Shown here piece after piece: positions 2,500 to 52,854 of a stretch of DNA of 64,000 bases. Made by a program: the position numbers and the translations under genes. Source of the stretch: Macrostomum lignano (lineage: Eukaryota). The stretch lies in assembly GCA_002269645.1 (NCBI GenBank), contig NIVC01001267.1:62001-126000 (forward strand), written 5' to 3'. The stretch's first letter is position 1. Every line of letters starts with the position of its first letter. The notes below the pieces were generated by a model. That model saw only the letters and a program-made list of their open reading frames with translations. It was not told the DNA's origin and ran no database searches.

Positions 2500-2520
2500 G
2501 TGAGGAGGCATCTGAATTTA

Positions 2521-22739: not shown

Positions 22740-23340
22740 GAAACGGTCACAAAAAGAGGCTGTGACCGTTCCACTTGTTACCGTGGTCTGTAATGCTTGT
22801 GACCGTTTATTGTGACCGTTCATGTTCGTGATAATAAGGTAACATGATACCGTTCATAGTTACCATATATGTGACCGTTTGTTCAGGGTCACATGTTACC
22901 GATCAATGTGACCGTATTTTGTGACCGTTTGTTTAGGGTCACATGTTACCGTTCAATGTGACCGTATTTTGTGACCGTTTGTTTAGGGTCACATGTTACC
23001 GTTCAATGTGACCGTATTTTGTGACCGTTTGTTTAGGGTCACATGTTACCGTTCAATGTGACCGTATTTTGTGACCGTTTGTTCAGGGTCACATGTTACC
23101 GTTCAATGTGACCGTATTTTGTGACCGTTTGTTCAGGGTCACATGTTACCGTTCAATGTGACCGTATTTTGTGACCGTTTGTTCAGGGTCACGTGTTACC
23201 GTTCAATGTGACCGTATTTTGTGACCGTTTTGCTTAGGGTAACTATGTTACTGTTTACTTTTGCCATATTTTGTGACCGTTTTGCTTACGGTAACTATGT
23301 TACTGTTTACTGTTACCATATTTTGTGACCGTTTTGTGAT
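22740..23340 (+). repeat. EnSpm left subterminal array (50-bp unit rich in GTGACCGT)
   Basis: Units start at 22921, 22971, 23021; reverse complement of the 34095-34740 array. Confidence 0.9.
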
Positions 23341-23520
23341 CTTGTGTGTTTTTTCTGACTATGGACCAACAGTATTATAATGTGCAAATAAGTAACAGGA
23401 ATACAAATCAGCAGTAATATATTAGATGTGAAGTAACCAGTAATTGCGGCAATTGAGCTTTATATACGCAAAGCGCGCTATTATTAAAATGCATTATTAT
23501 ATGGTACATAGCGATCGCAG

Positions 23521-23660
23521 AAGTGCGCCAAAAAGAAGTAGTTGAATTAGTGGGACATCGCAGAAGTGCGCCAAAAAGAACTAGTTGAATTAGTGGGACA
23601 TCGCAGAAGTGCGCCAAAAAGAACTAGTTGAATTATTGGGACATCGCAGAAGTGCGCGAC
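23521..23660 (+). repeat. 43-bp tandem repeat, about 3 copies
   Basis: AAGTGCGC at 23521, 23564, 23607, 23650. Confidence 0.85.
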
Positions 23661-23869
23661 CAAAAGTTAAGCAGTTTTAGAAACCCATTGTACTGCGACG
23701 TTTAGGTTTAGTTTAGCTTTGTTTAGTTTAGCACAATGATATGTTGCATACACAAATTTCTCCCTCCCACTCTCTCCATTTTTTTAATTTATTCCTGATA
23801 AGAACAGAAAAAGCCCAGTAAATAATAAAATGCCCGAAATGGCTGCATTTCAGTCTGGTACACTTCGAC

Positions 23870-25602: not shown

Positions 25603-25922
25603 TTTGGTTTCTACTTGGCAGTGCTGCAAATGAGGATGTAGTTTAATCTGAGTGTTACAAAGTACAGATATAGTAGAAAAAACGTGCAGCTGCTAGTTTA
25701 GTGTTAGTCCGTGTTTAGCGTGCAGGTGCAAGTTTAGTGTTAGTCCGTGTTTAGCGTGCAGGTACTAGCTAGTTTAGTTTAGTTTAACTATAGTTTAGTG
25801 TTAGTCCGTGTTTTACACAAGGTACTAAGATTAAAGGTGATCAATGGTACATTTGAAATGAATGGAACAACGGCTTGACAGGCGTATGTCGGACGGTTTA
25901 AAATACCGTTAGTAATAATTTC

Positions 25923-26188
25923 GTGATGTAGCGCAGTCGTGAGCGAGAAAAAGTTTTATACAAAACACAGCAGACGTGCGGTTTTAAAGTACGGTTAGAA
26001 ATTTAGTGATGTAGCGCAGTCGTGAGCGAGAAAAAGTTTTGTACAAAACACAGCAGACGTGCGGTTTTAAAGTACGGTTAGAAATTTAGTGATGTAGCGC
26101 AGTCGTGAGCGAGAAAAAGTTTTATACAAAACACATAGCAGACGTGCGGTTTTAAAGTACGGTTAGAAATTTAGTGATGTAGCGCAGT
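25923..26188 (+). repeat. 83-bp tandem repeat, 3 copies plus a partial, between the BEN and CtIP-like ORFs
   Basis: GTGATGTAGCGCAGTC at 25923, 26006, 26089, 26174. Confidence 0.9.
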
Positions 26189-26207
26189 CCTTCATCACTT
26201 TATTTGT

Positions 26208-27140
26208 CTAATTATTGCGAGGTTCCGGACCTCTTAGTTGTAGAGGTTTGCGACGACGCTTACCAACTTTCATCGCATCGATTGGTGCCTCTGGGGGTGT
26301 GTCCGGCATTTCTATGCGGAAAAAATTGGGGTCGTAGTTTGGCCTCGGTTGGTTGGACCGATGACAGCCAGCCGCCTGCAGGCGTTTCCTCTTCGTCTCC
26401 GGCGATAGGTTGGCAAACCAACCCTCGCATTGAACGCAGCAGTGCACTTCGAGCTGCATGCGCTCATCCCGCTTTCGAGCCTTAAAAACGCAGTTTTGCG
26501 GAATCCTCGCCTCAGGCAGTCGGTTATAGTCTGCTATGAAACTGTCCGACAACACCATTTGAGCCGGTCCGGTTTGAATGGCTTCAGTGGACATTGCCAA
26601 AGGCCCGTCACGCGACTGCTGCTCATCCTCACTGTCCAGCTGCGCGGCCGGCTGATTCAGCTGACGCCGACTCGCCTGGTTGTCGGCGTACCAGTTCTGC
26701 AGACTCTCGGGGCCCATAGTCTCCGATTCGCAGACTTGCGCACAGTCACGCGACTGCTGCTCATCCTCACTGTCCAGCTGCGCGGCCGGCTGATTCAGCT
26801 GACGCCGACTCGCCTGGTTGTCGGCGTACCAGTTCTGCAGACTCTCGGGGCCCATAGTCTCCGATTCGCAGACTTGCGCACAGTCACGCGCCTGGTTGGC
26901 GGCAATATCGCTGTAGCGAGTGTCCTTGAACGGCCATGCGGACTTTGTCACTTGAGTGCTGGGCACTACATCTGAACGCACGATAGCCCGATGGAAGCGC
27001 ACGTTGCGGCTGGTATCGAACACCGGCGAACCCGGTCGTCCGCTACGCAGGCGCTCCACCTCCGCTCTCAAGGCCCAGTTATCGTGAACCAGCGCTTTGC
27101 AGATTTCGCATGTTGCGGCGTGAGACCAGTGATCCGACAT
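26208..27140 (-). CDS. CtIP/Sae2/Ctp1 (RBBP8)-like protein, 310 aa, intact ORF
   Basis: RKRDERMQLEVHCCVQCEGWFANLSPETKRKRL..CHR..PNYDPNFFRIEMPDT aligns by eye with human CtIP [51 protein letters not shown]. N-terminal CxxC plus short coiled coil; 138-bp internal duplication. Confidence 0.85.
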   Translation of the reverse strand: MSDHWSHAATCEICKALVHDNWALRAEVERLRSGRPGSPVFDTSRNVRFHRAIVRSDVVPSTQVTKSAWPFKDTRYSDIAANQARDCAQVCESETMGPESLQNWYADNQASRRQLNQPAAQLDSEDEQQSRDCAQVCESETMGPESLQNWYADNQASRRQLNQPAAQLDSEDEQQSRDGPLAMSTEAIQTGPAQMVLSDSFIADYNRLPEARIPQNCVFKARKRDERMQLEVHCCVQCEGWFANLSPETKRKRLQAAGCHRSNQPRPNYDPNFFRIEMPDTPPEAPIDAMKVGKRRRKPLQLRGPEPRNN

Positions 27141-28304
27141 CGACGATGGGAAAGAAACTCGGACAGGTACGGAGCTGCAAGGCGTTAAGATGCAAAAAGT
27201 GTAAAATTTTGAAGCTTCAGATCAGAATGAAAGCAACAGCTGCGTCCGCAAACGGGCTATATTTTCCGTCTGCATATTTCCCGTACGCTTATATAAAAGA
27301 AGACAACACACACACACTGCAGCTGTGACCAGAGTAATAGTAAAAAGTAAGAACTGACCAAAATAGGCTCCGCATAACTTGCCGCAACCTTGCGGCCACC
27401 GGGCTATATGTATTATTATTATTATTATTATTAGTAGTAGTAGAATTATGAATATTAATTGCTACACACAGTACATACACGGTAGTACTAGTATTACTTA
27501 GGTTAATAATTGGAAGAACATAGGGTGAAAGAACAATAAAAGCTGTGGAAGAAAAATATTTGCGCATTAATGCGTCATTGCCATATATGGCCATATATAT
27601 GTAACATACGCTGACGACTTAACAGGCGTAGACAGTACTGTCAAGCGGCAGCGGTAGAAAAATAGCCAAATAGCCAAAATAAATGGCGCTGGCAAAATAA
27701 ATGCAGCTGGGTTGGCTGGCCGTTAGACTAACGAGACGTAGCCAAAAGTGTAACGTGAATGTGTTATTGAACAGTTGGAACTATTTAAATAGTATTTACT
27801 ATTTACTATTATTATTTTATTTATTTATTTAATTTTAGTTATTATTACTGTTTACGATGTACTATTTAATTAAAAAGCCTACGGCTGCTTCATGAAGTGT
27901 ATTATAGAGATGATGCTACTATTCTAGGCAATTATTTTGAAGGCTGCAGTAGACGGAATTTGAATTTTTGTTTTGAAAGTTTAATATTCGAGAAGTTAAA
28001 TTCTACATTCTCGTTAACTTTTGGCCACACCTCGGATGCTCTTTGAAATTTCACCTATATAGGTCTAACTGGACATGTCCCAATACTGCAGTAAAATCGC
28101 CAAAGTGGCGTCCGCTATGCCGAAGGCGCAGACCGGTCGGCTATGCAGTAGTGCAGCCATGGCGGTGAACAATCGCCGCAGGCGGGTAGAGCGACCACCA
28201 CGCGGCCTATCACGGCGAGCGGACAGCGGCTCGGGCTCCGGCACGACGCGGGCGGTGTAGGCGGCCTTCCAAAAGCTGGCCTCCGCCCGAGACATCTCGC
28301 GAAA

Positions 28305-29180
28305 TCACGCCGCTTTGCCGTACACTACGGCGACCGGCGGCCCGTTGGCGGACCGTTGCACCGCCTCGCCGGACTCCAGTACAGTTTGGCCATATCGATC
28401 GCACACCATGCGCAGGCAGTTGGCCATTGCCCTTTGCGCCTCAGCGGGCGTGTCACCATGGCTGGCGCCTTTTGATCTTTGTTGCGCCAGGTACGCAATC
28501 ATTGTCGTGATGACAATGCGGCAGCGGCGTATCTTGCTGGGCTCCTCGGCCCGTGCCGGTAGCTGCTTGGCCACTCGCTGCAGCATGTCGACCACCACAG
28601 CTTTTTCTGCAGCTTTGTCTGACGCCATGTCGATCCAGGCTGCTGGCCAGTTAAAGCCATTGGCGCACAGTGGTGCACACGATGGACAAACCGATGCCGC
28701 ACTATTTGCTGCGCCAGATGGCGGCTTCGCAGGTGCACAGTCCACTGCACGTTCTGCGCCGGATGGCGGCTTCGCAGGTGCACAGTCCACTGCACGTTCT
28801 GCGCCGGATGGCGGCTGCGCAGGTGGCAGTTGCGCAATGGAAATTTTAATGGCCCGTTGAATATCATCGGGTGATCGGGCTGCCGAACTTGCTTCTGCGC
28901 CGGCTGGACCAGCTGATGGCACCGGGTGGTCCAATCGCAGCAATCGCTTGCTTATGTCACTAGCCTGCATAGCAACCAGGGCCAGTTCGCCATGCAGGCC
29001 ATTGAAGCAATCTCGAAGGTCGCAGAGAGTCGCTTCGCGATCTGATTGTTGCAGCGGCAGCTCCTGTAGCGTACAGATGAGTGCACAGCTGCTATCAATA
29101 TTTTTCGCAATATGTGTGATATTGTCTTTTAAAATGCTTGCAGACCGCATTATTTTATCAAGCGAGTCTGCATCCGCCAT
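28305..29180 (-). CDS. Hypothetical 291-aa protein (N-terminal coiled coil, 15-aa repeat, helical C-terminus)
   Basis: ATG-initiated GC-rich ORF in AT-rich flanks, co-oriented with the other EnSpm ORFs. No motif recognised. Confidence 0.65.
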   Translation of the reverse strand: MADADSLDKIMRSASILKDNITHIAKNIDSSCALICTLQELPLQQSDREATLCDLRDCFNGLHGELALVAMQASDISKRLLRLDHPVPSAGPAGAEASSAARSPDDIQRAIKISIAQLPPAQPPSGAERAVDCAPAKPPSGAERAVDCAPAKPPSGAANSAASVCPSCAPLCANGFNWPAAWIDMASDKAAEKAVVVDMLQRVAKQLPARAEEPSKIRRCRIVITTMIAYLAQQRSKGASHGDTPAEAQRAMANCLRMVCDRYGQTVLESGEAVQRSANGPPVAVVYGKAA

Positions 29181-30491
29181 AGTAGAATTAGAGTTAATCT
29201 GGAATGGTTAATTGTAGGATAGCATAATTACAAGAACGGACACAATTCCATGAAGTATAAAACTGCCACTTTTTAGTACTTAAGAAATTAAGAAATTTGT
29301 CAGCCATTTTTTACCAAAAGTTTTTTATGTGCAATATCTACAGTTGAAGAATAAATGAATGATAAAATGTTGTCTGATTAGTACGTCGTCGTTATCAGGT
29401 GGCAGAAAGTCATTTTTGTAAAACTTTGGACATTTTTCTGAGCAAAAGACATAATTAAGTTTCTGTACCTTTTAAAAACAAATAGAAAGCTTTGGAGGGT
29501 TGAAAAAAACTATAGATAAAAGCATAGTACTTGCATCATCAGATAAAAATATTGGTGACCAAATAATCTGTTATCTTTTTCATATATTGGTACCTCAAAG
29601 TTACGAAATTAATGAAAAAATGTGTTATGACCATAAGGCTGCCTTTTTTGTATCTTTGTTGCCTTTTTGAGTTTAACTATATATTGCAAAAGGAGTATGA
29701 TTTCTGAAGATGTTCTTAGTCCAATCTAAAAAAAATGTATTGCAAAATATCAAACAGATATTATATGTTTGAAAAATGTTATAAGACTTTAGCTGTTTAG
29801 TTTCTATATGCCAAAAATTACAACCATATTACATATTACATATTACATATTACAACCATAAGTGCCACTCAACGCTTAATAGCATCTATATTAATGATGA
29901 CATCTATATGAAAGTTTATAAACATATTCTTGACAAAATTATATTTCATTTAAAATATTGCTCCAGTGTATTCTATTATTATATTTCATTTTATAAGTAA
30001 AAAAAGCAGTTATGCCTGTGCTTATATGGAATGAGCCTAAAGATGTTGTATTCACATAGCCACAGACATGAGACAATTTAATCGACAGTTCACTGAAAAC
30101 GTAACAGTCGAAAACGAAAAAAGATTTGAATCGGTGACTTGTCCGCCATATTGATTTTTAGTCCTGTTAACGACGTCGTGTTTTTTATTCACTACGTTTC
30201 TCACTTGTCGCACAATACTAACCTTCAAATTCCGTAGTTGCAATTGTCATATTTTAAGAGGTATAAGATGGTACCTACTTAAGAGAATCCTATCTTACTA
30301 TCACTATAGCAGTATGGTTCAGTAGATCGTATTTCTAGAAATAAATTTAACGCAGTGAATTCATTTTCCAGTGAAGCAGGTATAAACTTCATGTATTTCA
30401 TGCAAATTTACAGACTGTAACCCGCTGCCCATATTGATCAGAATATGAGATGTAGCCTTGAACAGAGCAATGTGAGTTAAACTATGGCGTA

Positions 30492-30673
30492 CAGGGGCGA
30501 CGGAGTCTAATATTTTTGGGGGGCACCAGGCACAAGGCAAGGGGGGCACAGGTACCTTCATAATTACTTCTAATTAGGGCCTAAAATCAGAGGAAGCACT
30601 AAAAATTACCGCCTGGACTTATTTTCTGGGGGGAGGCACGTGCCCCCGGTGCTGCAAGCTCCCGCCGCCCATG
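30492..30673. mobile_element. hAT-type MITE nested in the EnSpm
   Basis: Imperfect TIR CAGGGGCGACGGAG / CTCCCGCCGCCCATG; TSD ATGGCGTA / ATGACGTA (7 of 8). Confidence 0.7.
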
Positions 30674-30865
30674 ATGACGTATGTTTCAGACAGTTGGCAT
30701 CATTAAAGCACAGTTATGCGTGATAATAGATTCATGCATTATAAATGTAGCCAATTGGCTAAATGTACTACTGCTAACAAATATATACTACTACGTCGAA
30801 AGAAACTAAGCGACTATCCGACATCCGACATAAGTCAATGTCCCTATGCTGCGAAGGAAAATTGT

Positions 30866-33721
30866 TCATGTGGCAGAAACGCCACGTGAGAGTCCGACAC
30901 GGCACAAGATTTGACGACGGTGGCAACCGGGTCCAAATTCGAAGTAGAACTTGGACACCTCGTCGAAAGGGCTTCGTCGCAATCGACGCACGTGCGCAAG
31001 CGCACTACCGCCAAGTAGGCGACGCCCAGAGAAGCAGTAAAGTGGATTATCGCGTGGCTCGAAGTACTTCTCGGTCAATAAACGACGAACAACCAATTTT
31101 GCAGTGCCATCTGCAACGCGAATCGACTCCACTCGACCAAACTCAAATAATGTCGCGCCGCAATTAAATGCGATGAAGCAGGACGCAGATCTGCAGAATT
31201 GCAACTCAGGTCGAAAAACCTCCAGCTGGCATCCACTGTGAAGTACAGCCCTCGTGAAGCCACGTCCCTGTCGGCGCTCGTACAGCCGCACTCCACCGGC
31301 GGTTGTCAATGCCGGTCTATCTGTCGCCTTTGGGTTGGAGCTATTGAAAGTGTCTCTGACACCCAATAGTGAGCTGAGATAACGAGTCGCCGCACGTCGA
31401 GTTAGCTGCTTTACCAACTGTTTGTCTGAGTGTCGCGTACCGTGAACTCGCGAGCGCAAACGACCATGCATAGACTCGAAAAGTCCGGCTGATACGCGAT
31501 GCAGCGGTCCTAGCAGTAGAGCATACGCACTAAAATGCTCACATACCTGGTGAGCATTATACGTCTGTGCGGCTGCTCCGTAAAGGTTGCGCAGCTCTTT
31601 GTAAAAGTGCTTCAGGTTAGCGTCCGCTCGCAATATCTGCGTGTGCGGTGCGCCATCGAGACAAAGCCAGAAAATAGCAGACGACAGAAGCATAAAGTGC
31701 TGGTAGTAACTGGCATCAAGCAGGCCATCCCCTAGCACCATTGGTCCGTAACAAAGTAGCCACGCTTCGAGCTCGTGCCCACGGAAGTGCCCTAGCTCGT
31801 GCATCGTGCGCGGGGCCCGCTGATGCGACGCCGGCACGTGGATAGTCGCCAGCCTAGTGTTAATATCTGAAAGTCGTCTGGACAAATCCGGTGCGTGACA
31901 CACTCTCATGGGCTTCTTGCCAATTGGCACAAATAACTGCTCCATAGTGCGTCGGACAAGACCAGTCAGCAATTGATGCAGGAAACATGGTGGACAACCT
32001 TGAATGTAGTCAAAGCCCTCAAGCCGATAAAGTGGCGATACCGCTATGACTCCCAGGTTGTGCTCCGCTGCTACCGGTTTAGTGTTTGCCAGCATCACGG
32101 TGTCAGCCAGATTGCGAACTGTTGGCTGCGTGACATTGGCAGCCAGAGCTGCATGCATCGCATCATCCGACATTGCGCATGGATATATTCTCGCACTGCC
32201 CCCACGTTCTGCGTCGTGCAGGGAGATAGTGTAGCAATTGTCGCACCCGTACTCGGCATTAAACTGACGCATGTATTTGGTTTCTGCCCGTTGCGGAGCG
32301 TCTAGAATAAACAGTGGGTGCAGTCTAATTCTTCCACCCTGTTTGCCATCGACACCGGCACCTTTCATGAATTCAATACCAACTGACCGCAGTGCATTCA
32401 GTTGCTCTACTAGCCAAGGGAGATACGCAGTGGAGCGTAGTTTCCTTTTAGCGGACCAGAAGCCGGCTACAACGACATATCTACTCTTCATGTTGTCGGT
32501 TACTTCGTTAATGCTGACATAAACTGGACACATTTCCATAACAGACCTTTTAAAAATTGGAAAGCCATCGATGCACACTGAATACGTGAGGTCACTTCGT
32601 GAGCCCAGTGCAATTGACCGCTTGAATGCCGCATACGCAGTTCCGCTACCCATGTAAAGACGTCCCACGTTCGCCGGCTGATCGACGGGATATATTACGT
32701 GGTCTAGAAGATGGCATTCTTCGATCATCTGTCGTACTTGGCTGCCTATATCCATTCGCCAGAAGTGCCCAACAGACTCTGGCGATTCCAATCTCGCATT
32801 ACAATGCGGACAGTGATCTGGGCGCGGTTGTTGCATCTCGCGATCGCAGCTCAGACAATACACTGAAGGTCTGCATATCGTGTAGGAGTACGGTGTCAGG
32901 TTTAGCAAATTGTCCAGCATATGACGGGTCTGTGGAAACGCAGCATTTACAGGAAGCACGGCCTTTGTGTAGGCAAGCAATTTGTCGACACCATGTACAG
33001 AAAGATTTTGCGCAAAGGCCAGACACTGAGCTAGGGTTCCAATTGCAGCGTATGACACAGTAGCGCCAGGATAGGCGGCCAACTGGCAAAAGTTACGCAG
33101 TTTAGCGTCGTCTGAATCATAATCATCGCCGTCACCGTCATCGCTGTATTCGGCATCGTCGCTAGGCGCTTGGCTGGCAGAGCTTTCGATAGCTTCGCTG
33201 GCATCGCCGGCTTCACTGGCAGTTTCGCTGGCAGAGCTTTCGGCAGCTTCGCTGGCATCGCCGGCTTAACTGGCAGTTTCGCTGGCAGAGCTTTCGGCAG
33301 CTTCGCTGGCGTCGCCGGCTTCACTGGCAGTTTCGCTGGTGGAGGCTTCGGCAGCTTCGCTGGCATCGCCGGCTTCACTGGCAGTTTCGCTGGTGGAGGC
33401 TTCGCCGGTAGATGGCGGTTGTGAAGTAGCTTCGCCGGTAGATGGCGGTTGTGAAGTAGCTTCGCCGGTAGATGGCGGTTGTGAAGTAGCTTCGCCGGTA
33501 GATGGCGGTTGTGGAGTACCTTCGCTACCGATGTCGTCGTCTGGATGACGGCGCTTATTACCACGATTCGTCTGTGGATTTCCAATGGCGGCGCCCATTG
33601 CAGTCGTTCCAGATTGCAACCATCGTTGTCGCCTTTGAAATAGAAGCTGCACTGTCTTGCGTTCTCGAAATCGTTTCACTCTTAAACGATTCATAATGGC
33701 GCGGCGTTGCTGGTCTTCCAT
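30866..33721 (-). CDS. EnSpm/CACTA transposase (Tnp2-like); one in-frame TAA at 33266-33268
   Basis: Motifs YCLSC..CPHC, CIDGFPIF, LDAPQRA..QFNAEYGCDNC, FLHQLLTG, TYNAH, FESMHGRL. ORFs 33266-33721 and 30866-33082 share a frame; the stop is a GAA>TAA change in an ASEAGD repeat. Confidence 0.88.
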
Positions 33722-34094
33722 GATGGAGATTTTTGTTCTTAATGATTCTTATCCTCTGCAAAAGTGGCAAACGTTCATGAGAAATTAGTCAGTTGCTTCG
33801 TGGGTTACCGTCACTTCTCCTTATATACTGATTTGAAAGAGAACGTATCCCTGGGCATAGGTAATAAATTTGCTTCCCTATTCATAACTATCACTTGTCC
33901 ATACCTAACTATATATAACTGGGTATCCATGTGACCTATTTCAGGAGAGGCTACTCTGTAAAATTGTAAAGTATAAATTCAGGCAACAATAACACGTGCG
34001 TCACGCCGCACTCAAATTAAGCAACATAGTAGCAGCCTATTATGCAATGATGACGACAACAGTTGGTAGAAAGCGACAAGTAGTAAACTCCACA

Positions 34095-34740
34095 ACAGAA
34101 CAAAACGGTCACAAAATACGGTCACATTGAACGGTCACATGGTTACCCTAAACAAAACGGTCACAAAATACGGTAACTATGAACGGTCACATGGTTACCC
34201 TAAACAAAACGGTCACAAAGTACGGTAACATTGAACAGTCACATTGTTACCCTAAACAAAACGGTCACAAAATACGGTCACATTGAACGGTCACATGGTT
34301 ACCCTGAACAAAACGGTCACAAAATACGGTAACAGTGAACGGTAACATTTGACCCTGAACAAAACGGTCACAAAATACGGTAACAGTGAACGGTAACATA
34401 GTTACCCTTAACAAAACGGTCACAAAGTACGGTAACATTGATCGGTAACATAGTTACCCTTAACAAAACGGTCACAAAATACGGTAACATTGATCGGTAA
34501 CATGTGACCCTGAACAAAACGGTCACAAAATACGGTAACATTGATCGGTAACATGTGACCCTTAACAAAACGGTCACAAAATACGGTAACTATGAAGAGT
34601 CACATGGTTACCCTAAACAAAACAGTCACACAATACGGTAAAATTGAACAGTAACCTTGTTACCCCGAACTAAACAGTCACAAATACGGTAAAAAATGGT
34701 AACTGGTGACCGTAACGGTAAAAACACGGTAACAGCCCTC
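34095..34740 (-). repeat. EnSpm right subterminal array (~51-bp unit rich in ACGGTCAC)
   Basis: Reverse complement of the left array. Confidence 0.9.
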
Positions 34741-37320: not shown

Positions 37321-39601
37321 AATATTATCTTAATGTAAATATTGTGGGTGTAAAAAAAGAACATGCGGAAAAGCAGAAATTAGAATTTGAGTAAACAAAC
37401 TTTAAATTATGGTAATGAGGATTATTATTAAGATTAGAGGATTGTTAGCTTTAAGCGATAAAAATACACATTAGAAAAGTAGTATCGAAAGAGTAAAAAT
37501 TATTATATATTTAAACATAAATAATAAACAGTGGAAATTGTTTTTTTATTTTAGTATTAGCATCCATACTTCTTTGTCTGTAATCATTGTACTTTAAATC
37601 AGTAGCTCATTTTGGGATTATAGAATTTAAGTGATTAAGCTGGTGATAATGTATTGGAAAGCCACTTATAAGCAAAATTGATATTAGGTTAGCCAATAGC
37701 CTAATATAATACTAAGATGCACAGGGAAGGCCCCTTGCATGCACGCGCTTGCAGCTCACACTGCTGCTAATATCAGCAGCAGTCTGAAGGGTAAGCTCAA
37801 CCGCCTGCAAGTTAGTGATGTGGCAGTCTATTAGTGTGGCAGTTGCAGGCCTAAAGTAACTCTCATGGAGTCATGGACTCATGTTCTCTATTTTATTGGC
37901 TTGTTTATCTTTTAGCACAGTTTGAGTCTAGCAGTGCTAATATTAAACATATAGTAATCTTTTGTAACACTTGGGGTGAAGCACATTTAGTTCCTGTCAT
38001 ATTTATTGTCATTGAAGTCAAAGATCAGTTATATACCGGTATTGTATCAACGTATCGTATTCTTATTTTTAAAAAATTGGATTCTATATTTGAAACTTTA
38101 ACTGTTGTGCTACCTTAGATACATTTTTTTCTAGTACAAAAGTCCTAAATTTTTAATGTATTGTGATAAAACTTAAAAACTCTCCTGCTTCTATCATGAA
38201 CAAGTTATAAAATCTAAAGGTAAGTTTAGTTTTGTTAATGTTTTTCATAGCTGTTGACAACATGAACTAATAACCTTTTTTATTTAATGTATCATAAATT
38301 TATGATTTCTAAAGTTCATATGAGAATGCAGCGATACTATTGTTATTGTAAACTGTCATGCATTTAACACAGTTTTAAACTAAAGTAAAATTATTTAGAC
38401 ACTTTCTCAAGACCTCTAGCAGCACATTGGCTGTGCAATTTTATAATTTTTGGAGGCTAATATCATTAAAACATTACACTGCGGAAACAGGAAAAAAGTC
38501 ATTTTTGCATCACAAAATCAAACGATAGCATTTGATCTTGGTTAATGAAGATTACCATTCTTTAAATTTAGGATGCAAAAGATGTCAGTCTGTTGTATTT
38601 TATACATGTAAGTTGGGTTTAAAAAGTTTTTTCCTAATATATATTAGGAATATATATCTATATTTACTTATTTTTTAGATTTTTACAAGCCAAAAGTTAT
38701 AATTACTCACTTGTAACATTATTTAGCTAAAATATTTTGTTTTGCTTCATCTTGAAGCAATTATATATATAATGCTGAAAATAAAGTGAAAAAGTGACAC
38801 AAAAATAAAATAAATTCAGAGTATAAAAAATGAAAACTAGGAAGATGAAACTTATTAACATGCAACTATTAGTATATAAAATACAGCAGAGTAACATGTT
38901 GTGCACGCTAAATTAAAATAATGGTAGTCCTCATCCTCCAGAATGAAATGCTTTGGATAGTATATTTTGTGCTTAAAACATATTCTCCTCTATGCAGTGT
39001 ATTTTTACAGAAATCAGCCTCCAAAACAATTACAGGATCTCTGAATCTGACTGTATCGTGGGTTGCTTTCACAAGCTCGAAAGTTCACAACATCGAAACC
39101 AGTTATTTTCATAAGCTCGAAATTTCAGAACCTCGAAAATTTCAGCAGCCGACTTCATAAGCTCGAAATTTCTTTCACAAGCTCGAAATTTCACAACCTC
39201 GAAAACCATTTTAGCAGCCACTTTTACAAACCCAAAACTTCATAAGCTCGAAATTTCATATCCTCGAAAATTTTAGCCAGTGACTTCATAAGCTCGAAAT
39301 TTCACAACCTCGAAAACCATTTAAGCAGCCGACTTCACAAGCTCAAAATTTAATATCCTCGAAAATTTTAGCAGCCGACTTCATAAGCTCGAAAGCTAGT
39401 GTGAAAAATACAAATACAGTACATTTTCGAGGTTGTGAAATTTTGAGCTTGTGAAATCGCTTGCTAAATTTTTTCGAGGATATGAAATTTCGAGCTTATG
39501 AAGTTTCGGGTTTGTGAAAGTGGGCTGCTAGTGGTAGGTGAACTGATCAGGCGGATCAGCCACGTCGCCGATTTTCAGGCGGAAGAGGCGGGAAGTCTCG
39601 G

Positions 39602-41751
39602 CTAGCAAGTGGCCGAACTCGCTGCCTGTTCGGCAGCTGATGTCTGGCCTTGCTTCCGTTTCTTTTTCCTCTTCGCCTTCTGCGCCCCATCTTCAGTCGC
39701 ACCAGACTGCTCCGCCTCCGAAGTTGTCGCAGAGGACGGTGCCGCACGTTTCGCAGCGCCAGCACCAGTCGGGGCGGGATTGCCCGTCTGGCGGGTGACA
39801 GTTGTCTCTGGCTCGCTGTCGGAGTCCGAGGTGGACGCAGAAGCTTCTGGCAAGGGCGGCAGGGCTCGTGTCCGGCCAACAGAATTCGCCAACGCCGTCT
39901 CCGAAAGCCGCGCGTATCTCTGACTCACGCTCTCGAACCGAGAATCGAGCTCTTTGAGTAGAGCTAGTTGCGAGCTCTCTGGGGCAGGCGCTGACAAATC
40001 TGGTGCAGCAGCACCCGCCTTGCGGGCCTTGGCCCGCTGGCGTGCCGCTCTGGCCTTCTCCAGCCTCTCCTCCTCCAGTTTCGCGGCTCTGCGCAGAGCC
40101 TCGTTCTCCTGAGCGATGCTACGATTTAGCTCGGTCAGCTTGTTGCTCAGCTTGACCTTCATCGGCCCGATGTCCGTCTTGTGCAGGCCATAGCCTTTTG
40201 CGGACAGATCCAGGTCGCGCTGCGTCTGGACCAATTCCTCCCTCATCGAATTAAGGTTCTCGAGGTAGGAGCGGATATCTGCCTCCTTTCTGCTCCGGTC
40301 CGCGGTAGCGCAATTGCCGACCCAGGGAACCGGCAGTGGTATCCCTGGGCGCTGTCCGTTTAAAGGCTGCTGCTTAGTCGGAGGCCCAGCCGGCAGGTCT
40401 ACATAACTCGGAAGAACTGCTTCCGGCTCGTAGTCGGTATAATCCACCACTCGATAATCCGAGTCTCTCGCTCTAGCTACTAGGGGCCGATTGGCAACGA
40501 AGCCCCCCCCCCCGAGAGTCCCGGAAACGACGCTTAGCTCGGCGTCCAAGGGTTCGCTCAGAAGCGTCGCCTTCGTCTCCGGGATCACAGGGCGGGGCCC
40601 AATCCGGGTCGTTCAAATCGACCTCGAAGCCATAAGCTTCGAAGAACTGTTCCGACTCAAGCGAATGTCATTTGCCGTCGAGCTCGAAGGCCGTGTAGTC
40701 GTTATCCAGATTGTAGAAATCGACCTTACAGCCACGGCGAGCCAGCTTGCCAAGGGCGTTCATGAGCCAGTCGTCAGTGTCCTCGTTCCGCACAGCGAGG
40801 TGGTGGTTCAACGCGACTCGAAGGAAGTCCGCGCTCATCCCATAGTTGAGACCTTCCTTGGTCATCAGATGCACTCCGTAGACGACTCCAGTCGGAGCGC
40901 CGTAGACTCCCCCTGAACAGCCAGGAAGAGTCGAGCCGTCAGACTTGTAGCGGCATCTGATCCGCTTTCCTAAGAGTGCCAGAGCTCGTAATCGGGCCAT
41001 TCTTGCCAACCAGGGACCACATGCTGGTAAAAGCAGCGCTCCTCAACGGAGTGACACGAGCGACCGAAACTCCGAGCCGAGACATCAGGTCAGGCGTAAC
41101 AGGAATCGCCACTACATCGGCGTCCAGATAGATGGAGTTCTCAGTGTGCAAGTTAACCGAGGTGCCAGTCGGGCCAGTTGCAGTTATGTAGGCCGCTTTG
41201 GAAACCACGGCTTCCACGACATGCAAGGGCGCGATGATAAAGGGCTGGCCACAGGCGTCAAAACGAAAACCGTTGCCAGCCGCCCCGTTAGGCCTAGAGA
41301 GGGCAACTAGGCACTTCGGCATGCAAGCAGTGGACCTGAGATCACTCCCAGGAACCAGAGCTTCCAAGCGGTACTTGCCAAGAGCGGGAAACGGCTTAAC
41401 TCCGGCCAAGGTTTTCACCTGGACCATAGGGCCCTCGTCTAACGGGTGGACAGTCCGGGCCTCCCTTTCGGCGGCAATTCTAGCCCTCCTAGCGACGTAC
41501 CAGGCCCACAGGGCGCAAAGGCCTTCCAAGGCCAGAGCGAATAGCACGTACAGGAACGCGAAAGCTAAAATAAATAATAAGATGACTCGACCGTGTCCTA
41601 GTAGTTCCTGCGCCTGGGACAGGTCTTGATTCAAAACCGCTCGAACAACTCCGATGGAACAGAGAATAGAAACGGTTAAGATCGCCACAAAAGTGGACTT
41701 GACTGCAGATTGCAGAGTAGCAAAGATAGTTGTAAGGCCTAAGCCCGCCAT
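39602..41751 (-). pseudogene. Sobemo-like P2a polyprotein (TM, chymotrypsin-like Ser protease, VPg-like, basic C-terminus); two frameshifts and one stop
   Basis: Triad APLHVV / DADVVAI / STLPGCSGG..VYGVHL. Reading through the TGA at 40668-40670 gives DWAPPCDPGDEGDASE. The frame changes in the G11 run near 40503-40513. Confidence 0.78.
40320..40364 (-). promoter_or_regulatory. -1 ribosomal frameshift signal (U UUA AAC plus stem-loop)
   Basis: Heptamer at 40358-40364 is in frame with P2a (P-L-N). CCCAGGGA/TCCCTGGG 8-bp stem lies 7-8 nt downstream. Confidence 0.75.
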
Positions 41752-41778
41752 CGCAACTTTTGCAGGAGGTGCTGCTGC

Positions 41779-41934
41779 TCACGCTGCAGGCACCCTACCG
41801 GCGAGGTCAAGCGCGAACTCGGCGTTATGTCGACTGTCTGCTGGCTGACGCCGGCGCCCCGGACACTGCCGGTGGCGCGGCCTTTGTTCGCGCCCAAGCC
41901 ATGAATCGCGCCCTGTGACGCTGACTTTTGTCAT
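41779..41934 (-). pseudogene. Small 51-aa ORF upstream of P2a (possible viral ORF1)
   Basis: ATG 18 nt after the putative 5' end. Positional evidence only. Confidence 0.3.
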
Positions 41935-42994
41935 CCTGACAGCGTATTTTGTTGTTGTTGTTGTTGCTGCTAGAATGGTTTTCGAGGTTGTGAAATTTCG
42001 AGCTTGTGAAATTTCGAGCTTATGAAGTCGGCTGCTAAAATTTTCGAGGTTGTAAAATTTCGAGCTTATGAAGTTTCGGGTTTGTGAAAGAAAGTGCTTT
42101 TCGAGGTTGTGAAATTTCGAGCTTGTGAAGCGACCCCTGTATCGTATGTATGTATAGCGTCCTGATATAATTCTGCTCTGGGGCGTAGCCAAATAATGGG
42201 GACACTTAGGGGGGGGGATTTTTTCATTGCCTTTGTTTTTTGCTTCCTTCGCTAACATTGCAGTTAAATTTGTCTCTGTCCTGTCCCCCCTGACGACTGA
42301 CGTAAATCTGCCGGTCATCGAAATTTCTCTGAAAGATGGTTTCCTCAAAGTTCCTTGCATATGGTACATTGCATTGCATTCTGCATCAAAGGTTTATAAA
42401 TTCTGTATGTAAAAAGTAGATATTCTTTAATTATTTTCATTGTTTATCATTTTTACAGCGCTGTTTTGCCTTAACTACCTACAGAAAGATGAATTTTACG
42501 GTTGCTATAACAACAAAAAATAAACAATAAAAGCAAAAACTAAAGTGCCAATAAATTATTCTTCTTAGACAGAGCAGCACTTGGTAAAAGTTTTTGCCTG
42601 CTAAAACATTTACCCAGCGCTTATGTGCATGTAGATAAGTAGCTGCTGCAAAAGCCGTCTGTCTGTCTGTTGATCTGTCTGTATGACAAAGCTGTTAAAA
42701 GTCCTTTTGCAGCTTTACTGTCTCGGCTTTTTGCAGTCTCAGCTGGGGCTTAGGGTTAGGGCCCTAATTAGGCGTTCAGACGTTTACATGAACTTTTATG
42801 GTCTTTCTAGACTAGACGCAAGAGTCTAGTCTGTTGAGTCATACTTTAGCACCGTCGTATACTGTCGTACTGTATATATTTATGTATTATGTATTATGTA
42901 TTATGTATATATATATATATTAATGTTAGAGTTAGAAGTTTATATCGTCTAGTCTAGTCTAGACAGACATATATACCCTATATATATATATATA

Positions 42995-44520
42995 CTCAAT
43001 ATGTATGTATAATTCTGGGAACTGTCCGTATGTGAATTACGAATTTGTATGTAATTCGAATTCTGTTCGGGTATTCAAAAAGTTTTGGCAACAGGCTACT
43101 AAAATCTAGTGCAAGCTCATTATTCTAAAAGTAAGGGTTTACAGTCCTTCTATGTAGTCTCCGCCGCGCTCTATGCACTTCTGATGCCTCCGTAGCCACG
43201 AATCAAAGGCGCCGCGGTACTCCGATTCAGTGAATGCCCTCAACTCTGAATTGATAGCGCGCGCCAGGTCTTGCGGCCTCTGAAATTGGCGCCCAGCCAG
43301 CCTCTCGGTCAGTTTCGGGAAGGCCCAGAAGTCGCACGGAGCCAAGTCCGGGCTGTAGGGCGGGTGGCGAACGGTTTTCAGCCGGTTCTCCTCCAGAAAT
43401 GCTGAAGTCATCGCCGCAGTATGGCTTGACGCATTGTCATGGTGAAGGTGGATGCGACCTGGCTCCAAGCGCGTGCGTTGATTTTGCCGCACGAAATCAA
43501 CGACAGCTGGCAGGGCAGTGCTGGTGTAGAAGCTGGCGTTCACATTCTGGCCTTTGGGCACCATGACAACAGCTACTGGGCCACAGATGCTGAAGAACAC
43601 AACGAACATCTGCTTGCGTGAGCGAAATCCTGATCGCAGAACTGTTGGACGCTCTTCATCTGCGCCAATCCAAACCTTGTTCTGGCTCTTGTTGGGCACC
43701 TGGAAGTAGTAAAACCACTTCTCGTCACCGGTGACAATGTCAGAGAGGCGCTTGGTGCCGCCAGAACCGAAGCAGCGCAAGAACTCCTTACTGCAGCGAA
43801 CCCGCTCCTGGCGCTGCTCCTCAGTGAGCTGATGTGGCACCCAACGAGCTGTGATCTTCCTGAGCCCCAGCTGCTCATGCAGGATGGTGAAAACGCTGCC
43901 CTCAGATATGTCAAGTGTCTGGCTCAGCATGGCAACAGAAATGTTTGGGTCCTCAGCCACCAGCGATTGCACAGCGTCAATGTTGCTCTTGGTCACGGCT
44001 GTGCTCGGCCTCCCCGATCGAGGGTCGTCACAGAGGCTGCTCCTGCCGGCGCCAAAAGCCTCAATCCATCGCGCAACGGTGCGATAAGATGGAGCTTGAT
44101 CCCCTATCACCTGTGCTAAGTCGGCATGGATTTTGGTGGCGTTTTCTCCAAGTTGTGCGCGCATGAAGATGTAGAAGCGCGTGTTTTCTGAGCTGATATT
44201 TTCCATAATTTGTCAGAAGCTGAAACGTAGGTATGGTTAGGTGTGAATTGTGCAATAACGGGTGAAGCCATTGAGCTGAAAATTTATATGGTGGTCTCAG
44301 GCATGTTACTAAAAATATCCCTAAAATTTAGTGTGTTTTGCTTGAGCCAAAGTATATCTGCATATGCAGTTGCCAAAACTTTTTGCTCTGCTCTAATATA
44401 TATACTTGCGCTCGGCAGGAAGGAAAAAGATTTCGTATATAGCCGCGAACAGAATTCGAATTACATACAAATTCGTAATTCACATACGGACAGTTCCCAG
44501 AATTATACATACATATTGAG
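42995..44520 (-). mobile_element. Full-length mariner transposon (1526 bp)
   Basis: 75-bp TIRs (42995-43069, 44446-44520); TA on the left, TT on the right; intact transposase. Confidence 0.95.
43139..44206 (-). CDS. Mariner DD34D transposase, 355 aa, intact
   Basis: HTH N-terminus, WVPHQL, VTGDEKW, HHDNASSH, YSPDLAPCDFW; 34-residue D-D spacing. Confidence 0.96.
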   Translation of the reverse strand: MENISSENTRFYIFMRAQLGENATKIHADLAQVIGDQAPSYRTVARWIEAFGAGRSSLCDDPRSGRPSTAVTKSNIDAVQSLVAEDPNISVAMLSQTLDISEGSVFTILHEQLGLRKITARWVPHQLTEEQRQERVRCSKEFLRCFGSGGTKRLSDIVTGDEKWFYYFQVPNKSQNKVWIGADEERPTVLRSGFRSRKQMFVVFFSICGPVAVVMVPKGQNVNASFYTSTALPAVVDFVRQNQRTRLEPGRIHLHHDNASSHTAAMTSAFLEENRLKTVRHPPYSPDLAPCDFWAFPKLTERLAGRQFQRPQDLARAINSELRAFTESEYRGAFDSWLRRHQKCIERGGDYIEGL

Positions 44521-48589: not shown

Positions 48590-49386
48590 GAAAGGAGAAG
48601 GAATAGACTATTAGAAGAGAGGAGAGGCGAGAGGGGGATATGAGAAAACATGGAATATAAGAGGAGAGACAAGTGGTGAGGAGAGAGCAGAGAAGAAGGG
48701 AGGAAGAAGCGAGAGGAGGGGAGAAAGGAGGGAGAGAAAAGAGTAAAGGTGAGAAGAGGGGAGAGATGAGACAGAGGATCGATGAGAGGAGAGTAGAGAA
48801 GAGTGAGAAGAGAGTAGAGATGAGAGAGCAGAAAGAAGATGACAGAGGGTCAAGAGGAGAGGAGAGATTAGAGAGGAGAGAGTAGAAAGGATAGAAAAGA
48901 GAGGAGATAAGAGGGGGAGAGAAAGGGTGAGAAGAGAAGAGATAGAGATAAGAGAGGGGTGTAAGAAGATGGGAGAAAGGAGAGATGAGAGAGTAAAGGG
49001 AAGAGGAGGAGAGAGGAAAAAGATGAGATTGTAGAGATGAGACAGATGAAAGAGGAGATGAGAGATGAAAAAAAGTGAGAGGAGAGTGCAGAGAGACGAG
49101 AGAAGATAATAGAGGAGAAAGAGTATAGAAGAGGGAAGAGAAAAGAAGGGAGGAGTCAGAAGAGGTGAAAGAGAAGAGTACAGAGGGGATAAGTGAGAGA
49201 ACGTATAAGAGAGTAAAGATGACAGATGAGAGAGCAGATGAACAGACGAGAGATGGGAGAGTACAGAGAACAGAGGAGAGATAAGAGAGAAGAGATTACA
49301 GAGACTAGAAGAGAGAGGAGAGACAGGGAGAGAGAAGAGGAAATAGGAGAATGAAGAGGGGAGAGAGTAGAGAGAAGAAGAGAGAT

Positions 49387-49450
<64 letters not shown>

Positions 49451-49975
49451 AAGCGCAGAGCAGATAGAAACGAGAAGAGATAAGAGAGAAAAGATAAAAG
49501 AAGAGAAATGAGAGATGAAGAGAGAGAAGAGAGGTGAGGGAAGAGACGAGCGACGAGGGGAGAGAGAAGATATAAAACAAGAAAAGAGATGAGAGGAAAG
49601 AGAGAGAGGAAAGAGGTGAGGGAAGAGACGGGAGAGAGGAGAGAGAGAGGAAAGAGTAGAGAGGAGAGATGAGAGATGAGAGGAGAGAGTTAAGAGAAGA
49701 GAGAAAAGAATAGAGAGGAGAAGGAAGAGACGAGAGAAGAGGAGGAGAGAGGAGAGAGGAGAGGAGGGAGAAAACGAAAGAGTAGAGAGGAGAGAGGAGA
49801 GCAGAGAGAAAACGAAAAGTAGAAAGGAGAGAGGAGAGGAGAGAGAAAAGAATAGGGAAGAGAGATGAAACAGAAAAGAGATGAGGGAAGATACAAGAGA
49901 AGAGAGGAGAGAAGAGAGAGAAGAGAGGAGAGACGAGGGATGAGAGAGAAGAAAGGAAAGAGACGATAGAAATTT
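48590..49975 (+). repeat. GA-rich low-complexity satellite
   Basis: Almost pure purine strand; the Ser/Leu ORFs on the minus strand are artefacts. Confidence 0.92.
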
Positions 49976-52854
49976 TAAAGGATCCAAGGGACATAGGTAG
50001 AGTCAGGGAGAGGCCAGAGTTTGCCAATATATGTTGAGTCAGACAGACATTGCCTGGCATTCTGTGGAGTACCCCAGCAAACAATAACAACATTTGCCTC
50101 AAACCCTAATTTTACACGAATGTGCTCCATTTTATGTCTACCTCTATCCTACTATTAATTTGTTTGTGTATGGCCTTAGATTTCAGAATACATGCAAAGT
50201 AGTTCCGGGGATTAGAATTCCCCGGGTTCAAAATCCGCGGGTTTCAACAGCTTGTATATATATAGAAGAGAGGAGAGGCGAGAGGTGTAAGAGAAAAGAT
50301 AAAAGATAGTAGGAGAGACTAGAGGGTGAGGAGAGAGCAGAGAATAGGGAATAGATCCACCTATAATAAATGTCTAAGTCTGTTGTAACTAAATGCGCAT
50401 AGCTTAAAACTCACTATATATGGCTTATAACTAAGCAAATATTGGTTATTATGAAGCGTATTATCAAAGTAAGACTCTAGGAAGTCGAACAATTTTAAAG
50501 TTCAAAATGCCATCCACAATTTGTGCAAGCGAAAATCACAATCAAAGTATTTCAGGGCCAAGTGCCAAAGCCCCATTGGGTGGGTGCCAAAAAAGGGGCA
50601 TCAGGGCATTTTGGGGTCTCCAAAGGAGAGGGCACTATACCTTTGCTTAGAGTTGCTTAAAGGTGGTAAAACGTGGCGCCAAGTCTTATGACGCTCGTTG
50701 AAATAATAATCTAATATATTCCATTGAAAAAACTTGATATCGTGCGCTTGCAGCGAAACTGAATTTTACTAAGAATTATTCAAACAGTGGCATTTTCGCT
50801 TTAAAATTATTCGATTCCTTGAACTTACCTGTATTTAAAGACAAATTAAAAATAACCAAGTATAGCCGTTAAGCTTGCGCTCAAATATTTATACTCTATG
50901 CAGGCCTATGCTTTAAATGAGAGACAAGGATAGCCTTTTCTTTCCAGCTCTTTATATAAGCTCCTTGATACTGGTGAATAAAGCCACAAATTAACCTATA
51001 CCGTGGGTGGTGGCCGTCGGTGAATCAAAAAGCGAGAGGCTTATTAATCAAAGGGAGGGGTTGGCTTGCCTAACTCACCGTGGGAGAATTCTCATTGGCC
51101 CGCGTGCTCAGTTTTGGGGTGGGTGTAGAACGGTGGCCCTCTCTCAATGTACGATAACTCCTAGTAGGCTGCTTGCAAGTCAGCGTTCAAACTTTTATGG
51201 GAAAACTATTGACTATAAATAATATACTAGAATTTAGAATTATAATTTATAATGTATATTAGTATATATAGAATATATACGAGCGTATGGTCAGACACAC
51301 AAGACAGACAAATCTGCTGGCTCATCAGTTCAAGTGCTTGGAAAGTCAGTTTGTCATTGTGGGGAACAGAATACTCTCAAGTCGCAATCAGATAGCTCGT
51401 AGTAGGACAGTAGTTGAATTCCTTACTGAACTGTCAAGGCTTAACGTTACCAAACGTTAGGCTTGACAGTGAAGGCTTGACAGTGAAAATTGGATTGTGT
51501 CCAATTTGAAGAGGATTGGTAAAAGTGGAGCGACGCTATAGAGGATTTAGTGAAATTCTTGCGAAACTTGACAAGCAAATTGTCTCTACCGAATTACAAC
51601 TTCCTGAGTTCGGGTAGCCAAATTGCTGCTTGCCGGTTTTGTTTGGATTCTCGCTAGCAGATTTCGGCTAGCTAAATCCTCGCTAGCAAAATTCCTGCTA
51701 GCAAAGTTCATAGACCCGCTTAGCACAAGCTACTGAAAACCGCGTATATTGAAACCGTGGAATTCCAATCCCCGAAACTACTTTTGCATGTTTTCCAAAA
51801 TCTGAAGTCATATTCCAACAAAAACTTGTCAATAGTTAAAATGGCTGGCGTGCTGCGCAGAATGTCAGGAAATGTCTGTCTGACTCAAGAACATGTATTG
51901 GCAAACTCTGGCCTCTGCCTCTCTCACGTCCCTCGGATTCTTCTCTCGTTGATTTTCCCTCACATTTATCACCTGTCTGTCTGCCCGTTTATCTGTCCTT
52001 CTCCGTGTTTTTCTGTCTCTCTGTGTGTCTGTACAGGTGTCTGGACTGTACATGTATGTGTCCAAAAAATTAAAATTTGTGTTGAAAAACAAATGGTGTC
52101 CTATGGCAACTTACCAATGATGGACTTACCAATGATGGGCCTCGCCCTCGCCCCACGCCTCGCCCTCGCCCTCGCCCTTGCCCTCGCCCTCCGCCTCGCC
52201 CTTCGAAGCCAGTATTTCTGTAAAGTTCAAAAGTCGCAATCTAAGTTTTTTTGAGAGGCGCGAAATTTGTTCTATCAAGATATTTCGGGTGGGGCGGGGA
52301 TGGGACGTGAATAAGGTCTCTGATAGCGAGAACATTAGAACCAGAGAACAAGTGTAAGTTTTACTCTGAGAACTGTTGATTATTTCATTTATAGTAAATT
52401 GCTTATTAACTCTAAACTGCTCAGCTTTTGATGCACAGAGACGTTATACATTAACTATAGTTACGTATAAGGCTATTCTGAGATTAACATGAGGGAATCA
52501 GATAGGAAGATATGACATTCAGGGATAAGGATGTGAGAATAAGGAAATCTGAAGATTCGGGAATGCCTTCTCTGACCAGCTACTTCAAGTAGAAATGTAA
52601 ATCGTAAATGGAGGAAATGAGAATGAATATTTAGGAATATACAATTTAGCATTCAATATCTTACCCAGCCAGCTGGCCCAGCAGCTGGGCCTGCGCCAGC
52701 TGTAGTTGGGCGACAGTGTGGATCTGGAAATAAATTAATATTTACACAAAAATAAGGTTGCTGAATTTAATTCTGACTAATGTCCCAGTGCCTGTCTATC
52801 AATCTGAAAGCTCAGTACACAGAGTGACTTATTCTAGCTTGAGATTCTGTCTGT

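Follow-up and report, generated by a model that had tools for sequence, protein, structure and literature searches.

The question raised by the DNA described here is how a compact, G+C-rich block with broken protein-coding frames came to lie inside a tandem repeat of an animal genome. The stretch analysed, hereafter the window, comprises 64,000 nucleotides of Macrostomum lignano (positions 62,001 to 126,000 of the forward strand of contig NIVC01001267.1, assembly GCA_002269645.1). An earlier note, made from the letters of the window alone, had proposed an endogenous fragment of a sobemo-like RNA virus at positions 39531-41965. Our analysis leads to the same reading, to which we assign a probability of roughly 0.85: the block would be a non-retroviral endogenous viral element (EVE), made when 2.4 kb from the 5' end of a sobemo-like (Sobelivirales) virus's RNA1-type genome were copied into DNA; the copy was placed in an animal tandem repeat and has since decayed. 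This reading is carried by a foreign block with sharp G+C steps that interrupts a host repeat and has the same 8-mer at both ends, and by the homology of its protease to open reading frame 1 (ORF1) of seven viral contigs that encode a protease and an RNA-dependent RNA polymerase (RdRp), the RdRp frame overlapping ORF1 in the -1 direction.

The virus-derived insert spans positions 39532-41965 (2434 nt), so that the location first proposed holds and is refined by the paired 8-mer and the G+C step. Its sense strand is the minus strand, on which all features of the insert and both copies of the 8-mer are given below. G+C content is 58.5% in the insert and 38.5% in the flanks (2 kb on each side), with a sharp step at both borders, and directly outside each border stands the 8-mer CTAGCAGC (upstream copy at 41966-41973, downstream copy at 39524-39531). 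The insert interrupts a host array that is palindromic overall, with a period of 16 nt and higher-order units of 46-62 nt. This array occupies 41974-42130 upstream of the insert and 39067-39523 downstream of it, the downstream part being palindromic with the part beyond the insert, and the repeat unit runs on across both copies of the 8-mer, reading from one flank into the other. The pair of 8-mers is probably a target-site duplication of 8 bp, which fits a repeat unit that reads on across the flanks; it is probable rather than certain because CTAGCAGC belongs to the host repeat unit. Neither terminal direct repeats nor terminal inverted repeats (of the kind found as long terminal repeats, LTRs, or as TIRs) are present in the insert, and the 64-kb window holds no second copy of it.

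Could such a block have arisen without any integration, as an exogenous virus contig or contaminating cDNA that was mis-joined during assembly? As assembled, the virus-derived sequence adjoins host DNA at either end, and one repeat array flanks both ends; repeats are where assemblers err, and the G+C content of the insert shows no drift towards the host value. Nonetheless, the two flanks belong to one host array and are in register, with the 8-mer placed exactly at the two ends; the gene contains frameshifts and stops, and no polymerase is detectable. Moreover, no identical or close sequence was present in the collections searched, and exact-sequence look-ups of proteins of the window gave no match on record. 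We therefore consider a mis-join very unlikely, and continue with the insert as an integrated viral copy.

On the sense strand, the insert contains three long open stretches, one in each of the three frames, which make up a broken ORF1-like (P2a-like) polyprotein gene (39602-41751). Two frameshifts and one or more in-frame stops interrupt the gene, and a stop is unavoidable because all paths from the second frame into the third cross one; these broken frames argue against a live virus. The first stretch starts with ATG and encodes two hydrophobic segments followed by the motifs PLHVV and DADV, while GSTLPGCSGG and VYGVH are found in the second. The triad of His, Asp and Ser that had been suspected from these motifs is borne out by a profile of ORF1, built from seven RNA-virus contigs of ~3 kb that encode protease and RdRp (L001-L007): PLHVV, DADV, GCSGG and VYGVH fall on its invariant His, Asp, Ser and GxH columns. 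The profile matches the first stretch at profile positions 114-246 (E 5e-14) and the second at 250-310 (E 6e-7), both values lying far outside what chance would give, which means that the two stretches abut in the ORF1 of the relatives though their frames differ. The matches delimit a chymotrypsin-like serine protease domain at 40755-41379, interrupted by one of the frameshifts. The same profile matches the sobemovirus protease structures 6fez, 6ff0, 7yzv, 1zyo and 6m78 (E 1.5e-9 to 4e-8), of which 6fez and 1zyo represent the Ryegrass mottle and Sesbania mosaic sobemovirus proteases (PMC10048871). The link to sobemoviruses thus runs via the profile of the relatives, the open stretches of the insert themselves having no direct match to those proteases.

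An exhaustive phmmer search of 1.84 billion representative proteins returned four matches, two of which are true (P0003 and P0004). The other two, P0001 and P0002, were set aside as repeat proteins with spurious matches. P0003, to which BLASTP gives 33% identity across 142 residues (E 1e-13), and P0004 are each the ORF1 of a short RNA-type contig, of 3094 and 2463 nt. Across the set of relatives, the second ORF lies in the -1 frame, encodes an RdRp and shares 214-273 nt with ORF1. For the best-matching contig, the RdRp has 58% identity with 'hypothetical protein 2' from Hubei sobemo-like virus 33, 55% with the RdRp of Myrmica rubra virus 7 and 50% with Hubei sobemo-like virus 29, and its further matches carry sobemo-like or sobeli-like names; the sobemo-like nature of the relatives' RdRp holds where it was tested. 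The lineage of the source virus itself is unsampled, with no close sampled relative: only two true matches, at ~30% identity, emerged from the 1.84 billion proteins, and scans for close relatives with the first and third stretches found none among IMG/VR and JGI metagenome contigs. Likewise, a word-indexed homology search with the first stretch and a phmmer search of PDB sequences with the first two stretches gave no match, and Peptidase_S39 of Pfam was not matched by pieces of the window.

The protease might be thought to derive from a host or transposon-borne gene or pseudogene rather than from a virus. Chymotrypsin-fold proteases are common in animals and the window is packed with transposons. 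Yet the only significant relatives are the ORF1 proteins of RdRp-bearing RNA-virus contigs, the PDB matches of the profile are viral proteases and not cellular trypsins, and the succession of anchor, protease and frameshift signal is a viral layout. No host, retrotransposon or cellular protease homologue appeared at any stage, including the 1.84 billion proteins, and neither introns, LTRs nor TIRs were found in the insert; reverse transcriptase and integrase were missing among the window ORFs scanned against Pfam. A host origin of the gene is thus extremely unlikely, and the viral origin is retained below. Capture of such a gene by a transposon was rejected on similar grounds, the insert being without terminal repeats. 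The AlphaFold model of the first stretch is poor (predicted local distance difference test, pLDDT, of 60) and shows a partial, beta-rich region, whose fold matches are only HtrA, DegS and 3CL proteases with weak scores (E 0.02-0.1). These are consistent with a protease but are no evidence by themselves.

Astroviruses share the same domain order, and an astrovirus-like origin was likewise considered and rejected. The heptamer of the insert is UUUAAAC and not A_AAA_AAC, the relatives' RdRps group with those of sobemo-like viruses, and the viral-polyprotein protease chains that the profile matches significantly are of sobemovirus type, and its matches up to E 1 include no chain with an astrovirus label.

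The order of domains predicted for the gene is that of a membrane anchor, a chymotrypsin-like serine protease, an acidic VPg-like region, a helical region and a basic tail. The anchor corresponds to the hydrophobic N-terminus already remarked upon in the earlier note: Kyte-Doolittle hydrophobicity places two segments at residues 13-42 and 49-87 of the first stretch (41491-41715), which are predicted transmembrane helices and are modelled by AlphaFold as two long helices. Beyond the protease, the VPg-like region (40566-40734) contains the W-A and acidic motif DPDWAPPCDPGDEGD, between the second and third stretches. This W-A motif followed by an acidic stretch had also been proposed before, and the claim stands in part: W-A-P and then an acidic stretch are present at the expected place, but they only approximate the sobemovirus VPg motif and do not align significantly to the relatives. 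The class of W-A motifs concerned is described in a review of sobemoviruses (PMC4488728). The VPg-like region is also spanned by an in-frame internal duplication of 102 nt (34 codons) that repeats an acidic VD..D motif, which indicates a putative duplication within the VPg-like region of the ancestral virus. At the nucleotide level, two direct repeats of 31 nt (74% identity; 40602-40632 and 40704-40734, minus strand) are spaced 102 nt apart.

The third stretch comprises 328 open codons, a length that would arise by chance with a probability of ~5e-6 at the G+C content of the insert (our own estimate). It starts with a disordered, acidic N-terminal third, in which the heptamer lies, continues with three long helices and ends in a disordered tail. 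The helices, coiled-coil-like in the AlphaFold model and encoded in the 0 frame (39875-40312), comprise residues 93-132, 137-190 and 204-238, mostly with pLDDT above 90. In the tail, the expected basic character is indeed present, in the form of a cluster QKAKRKKKRKQ (39650-39682) and a net charge of +7 across the final 28 residues. None of the three open stretches has a match in Pfam, and past the protease the ORF1 profile of the relatives has no match in the insert.

A further part of the argument is the putative recoding signal. A slippery heptamer U_UUA_AAC lies at 40358-40364, 64.5% along the ORF1-like gene and 253 codons before its stop; it is in the X_XXY_YYZ phase of the third stretch and is the sole in-phase canonical heptamer of the insert. 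The UUUAAAC had been noted as in-frame, which is right relative to its own open stretch only, the listed motifs being spread over three frames rather than one. A hairpin had been placed 7-8 nt downstream of it, and a stem-loop of 8+3 bp is found at 40321-40349, starting 8 nt after the heptamer. The 45 nt past the heptamer fold at -22.6 kcal/mol, which ranks in the top 2.2% of all such windows of the insert, while the z-score against shuffled sequences is modest (-1.7 to -1.8). In sobemoviruses, UUUAAAC has a simple stem-loop located 7 nt downstream, or 8 nt in the case of Ryegrass mottle virus, and the shift occurs after two-thirds of P2a (PMC4488728). The predicted signal fits this arrangement in heptamer phase, spacer, hairpin and position.

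Stop codons were counted in the frames on either side of the heptamer. Expected numbers were obtained by shuffling the order of the 0-frame codons, the region considered being the 253 codons from the heptamer to the ORF1 stop. There, the -1 frame contains 3 stops where 12.5 are expected (P ~1.5e-4), and both halves of the region are depleted, whereas the +1 frame contains 8 for 7.5 expected. Upstream of the heptamer, the -1 frame has 11 stops in the first stretch (11.8 expected), 4 in the second (4.9) and 2 in the upstream part of the third (4.5). The -1 frame is open from three codons ahead of the heptamer and, apart from its three in-frame stops, continues past the ORF1 stop as far as the insert's final base (39532-40373). 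Because the depletion is confined to the -1 frame downstream of the heptamer, and is seen neither upstream nor in the +1 frame, a real -1 ORF once overlapped this region; its entry point was the heptamer, and the DNA copy stops before the ORF does. During translation of the ancestral virus, slippage at the heptamer would have taken ribosomes into this ORF, which overlapped the last 253 codons of the polyprotein gene and would have led into the RdRp.

The same observations can be set against an explanation in which the sobemo-like element is real while UUUAAAC and its hairpin are coincidental, the real slip site and polymerase ORF lying at or beyond the copied 3' end. The long 0-frame tail would then correspond to the C-terminal part of ORF1, a variable region that the closest relatives have too. 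Their slip sites (G_GGU_UUU, of GGUUUUU type, or U_UUU_UUA) lie at ~87-89% of ORF1, and past the protease they likewise carry a coiled coil and a tail that is basic and rich in Ser. One in-phase canonical heptamer in ~715 codons is about what chance would supply (~1.4 by our own estimate, assuming even base composition), the hairpin z-score is modest, as said, and the -1 frame has no similarity to RdRp. What coincidence does not account for is that the depletion of -1 stops begins at the heptamer and that the frame opens three codons ahead of it; furthermore, the hairpin is among the most stable of the insert and has the canonical spacer of 8 nt, and heptamer, spacer and position all agree with the sobemovirus arrangement (PMC4488728). 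On balance a coincidental heptamer is improbable, and we keep to a signal that was once used.

Several side observations concern the recoding sites of the relatives. Their polymerase frame starts with a conserved GFSQAP, right at the GG(G/U)UUUU slip site (L001 position 1641, L003 position 1696, and L004-L006), and the GGUUUUU of L004-L006 is non-canonical with respect to X_XXY_YYZ. L001 and L003 share a hairpin 16-23 nt downstream of the slip site, with paired changes. The ORF1/ORF2 overlap of L007 is without a canonical slippery heptamer and has at its start a run of ten C (1151-1160), which may be an artefact of assembly or else mark another kind of recoding site.

What did the -1 ORF encode? 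That the RdRp is missing from the fragment, as the earlier note had it, agrees with our searches: no RdRp motif is detectable in the window, the RdRp profile of the relatives has no match in it (best E 6.6), and Pfam finds nothing in pieces of the -1 frame. Going by the plan of the family, the -1 ORF is presumed to be the N-terminal, poorly conserved part of the polymerase; in that case the 3' end of the DNA copy most likely falls within the polymerase ORF, short of the first conserved RdRp motif. Alternatively, the depleted frame may have encoded a long, previously unrecognised overlapping protein rather than the start of a polymerase. No coat protein was found in Pfam scans of selected window ORFs, which did not include a search with a coat-protein profile.

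At its 5' end the sense strand of the insert begins with (AAC)5 (41951-41965), which on the antisense strand is a 3'-terminal (GTT)5 and is the sole perfect run of that repeat in the window. It is either a viral leader or an integration tail, and the relatives vary too much at their 5' ends to tell whether it is viral. Between it and the ATG of the ORF1-like gene lies a leader at 41752-41950. Within the leader, an Arg-rich upstream ORF of 51 codons (41799-41935, minus strand) shares the frame of the polyprotein ATG, with one stop between them; it could be a small upstream ORF, a part of the leader or a further break in a longer gene. The insert thus comprises a 5' leader and the entire polyprotein gene, ends ~70 nt past the stop of that gene and has no poly(A).

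How does the insert compare with known viruses? The invertebrate sobemo-like viruses with an RNA1 of ~3 kb, among them Hubei sobemo-like virus 33 (KX882827.1, L004), Myrmica rubra virus 7 (MW314643.1, L006) and the Logan contigs L001-L003, L005 and L007, share with it an ORF1 with an N-terminal hydrophobic region and a Ser protease whose His, Asp, Ser and GxH columns are the same, followed past the protease by an acidic region, a helical region, a basic tail and then a -1 overlapping ORF. Their general plan has been described as an RNA1 of ~3 kb, on which the RdRp ORF is overlapped by a hypothetical or peptidase ORF, and a capsid on a second segment (PMC10287012; PMC12994069). They differ from the insert in several ways. 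Their slip sites are GG(G/U)UUUU or UUUUUUA, 71-91 codons before the ORF1 stop, where the insert has UUUAAAC and 253 codons, and their -1 frame starts at once with GFSQAP and RdRp, whereas that of the insert has no RdRp similarity. Five of them (L001, L003-L006) carry a C2H2-like finger, which is missing from the insert as well as from L002 and L007. Finally, they are intact RNA genomes and the insert is broken DNA in a host repeat. The finger of the relatives, PYPCGF..C..H..H, lies between the coiled coil and the slip site (residues ~460-490 of P0003) and matches cellular zinc-finger PDB chains at E ~1e-3.

With the plant sobemoviruses (Solemoviridae; for instance Sesbania mosaic virus and Ryegrass mottle virus) the insert shares the order of transmembrane, protease, VPg-like and C-terminal domains, an approximate W-A type motif with an acidic stretch behind it, the heptamer UUUAAAC, whose simple stem-loop lies 7-8 nt downstream, a shift at about two-thirds of P2a and a -1 ORF that overlaps much of the P2a tail. 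Unlike them, it has no P1, RdRp or coat protein gene, and its host is an animal genome. The insert has most of the traits of a P2a/P2ab expression unit, the VPg motif being approximate and RdRp similarity lacking. It is tempting to think of an unsampled, animal-associated sobemo-like lineage with the expression architecture of plant sobemoviruses (UUUAAAC, a stem-loop at 8 nt, a shift after two-thirds and a dual-coding overlap of ~250 codons), unlike its nearest relatives among invertebrate viruses, and we put this forward as a tentative possibility only. If true, the canonical sobemovirus recoding unit would be older and more widespread than the plant genus.

Most described EVEs of invertebrates derive from negative-strand, flavi-, toti- or partiti-like viruses and were usually recognised via RdRp, nucleoprotein or capsid. 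The insert resembles other non-retroviral EVEs of invertebrates in being a partial copy of an RNA-virus gene, with frameshifts and stops, in DNA rich in repeats and transposons; unlike most of them, it is a fragment from the protease side in which a recognisable recoding signal survives along with the statistical trace left by an overlapping ORF. To our knowledge, few fossils of small plus-strand RNA viruses from the sobemo/luteo group have been described, and the polymerase was usually the means of recognising the reported ones. A Luteo-Sobemo clade is listed among the sources of arthropod EVEs (PMC6955108, Table 4). We found no description in the literature of a protease-side sobemo-like EVE or of a fossil frameshift signal.

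A number of points weigh against the viral reading or parts of it. About 60% of the gene, beyond the protease, is without a detectable homologue, and the closest relatives are only 28-33% identical, over the N-terminal part of the protease. The relatives use other heptamers, closer to the ORF1 stop as described above, with hairpins further downstream. RdRp similarity is missing from the -1 frame and from the whole window. Some of the frame breaks could be sequencing errors, and CTAGCAGC being part of the host repeat unit, the apparent duplication could reflect periodicity.

Another question regards the route by which viral RNA became host DNA. Read in antisense, the copy would be 3'-complete and 5'-truncated, would end in (GTT)5 and would be accompanied by an 8-bp duplication. 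The complete 5' end of the viral sense strand, the other end being cut off, the (GTT)5 at the antisense 3' end and the 8-bp duplication suggest that a host non-LTR retrotransposon could have made the copy by target-primed reverse transcription of the viral minus strand. We hold this route to be rather doubtful; alternatives are that viral cDNA was captured during repair, or that (AAC)5 belongs to the viral leader.

Whatever the route, two frameshifts and at least one stop mean that the polyprotein cannot be made from the locus. We infer that it has no protein function now and serves at most as a template for small RNAs. A role as a piRNA source, which the earlier note had considered possible, goes beyond what the sequence shows, namely surroundings dense in repeats and transposons; source loci of small RNAs do occur in settings of this kind. 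The stops in both frames suggest only a few percent of neutral change since integration (our own rough estimate, with a wide error), and the G+C content of the insert has not relaxed towards the host value.

Infection of animals by sobemo-like viruses is mostly inferred from transcriptomes, and the element ties the lineage of its host to a past infection of this kind. Standard screens would miss it: Pfam and direct searches with its own pieces found nothing. Such a locus can pass for an exogenous virus when viruses are sought in RNA-seq data. Although broken, it preserves a readable recoding signal together with the statistical shadow of an overlapping gene.

The wider context of the insert is eukaryotic and animal-like, the window encoding a Mos1-type mariner transposase of full length together with a hAT domain, a BEN domain and an ORF of C2H2 type; Rfam and tRNA scans of the window returned nothing. 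The mariner transposase is encoded 1.2 kb from the insert by an unbroken ORF of 355 aa (43139-44206, minus strand), which contains HTH_48 and DDE_3 domains and aligns over its full length to the Mos1 transposase (PDB 3hos, E 3e-37); it may belong to a recently active copy. A unit of ~11 kb at 23178-34518 has ends formed by 160-nt inverted repeats (23178-23337 versus 34204-34518) and contains four long ORFs on the minus strand, among them a Cys/His-rich ORF of 738 aa (30866-33082, minus strand) with no Pfam match and an ORF of 633 aa (23728-25629, minus strand) with a weak BEN domain. This unit looks like a large DNA transposon. Further away, an ORF at 18590-19723 (minus strand) encodes a hAT-family C-terminal dimerisation domain (E 6e-13), and another at 1913-2503 (plus strand) encodes several C2H2 zinc fingers, including a ZNF451-like double finger (E 1e-8). 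Tandem repeats also occur as a 29-nt array at the start of the window (17-1157) and as a satellite array at 57700-63500 with units of 236/238 bp and a higher-order periodicity. Finally, a purine-rich tract at 48600-50000 displays an extreme strand skew, with a GC skew of 0.63 and an AT skew of 0.54.

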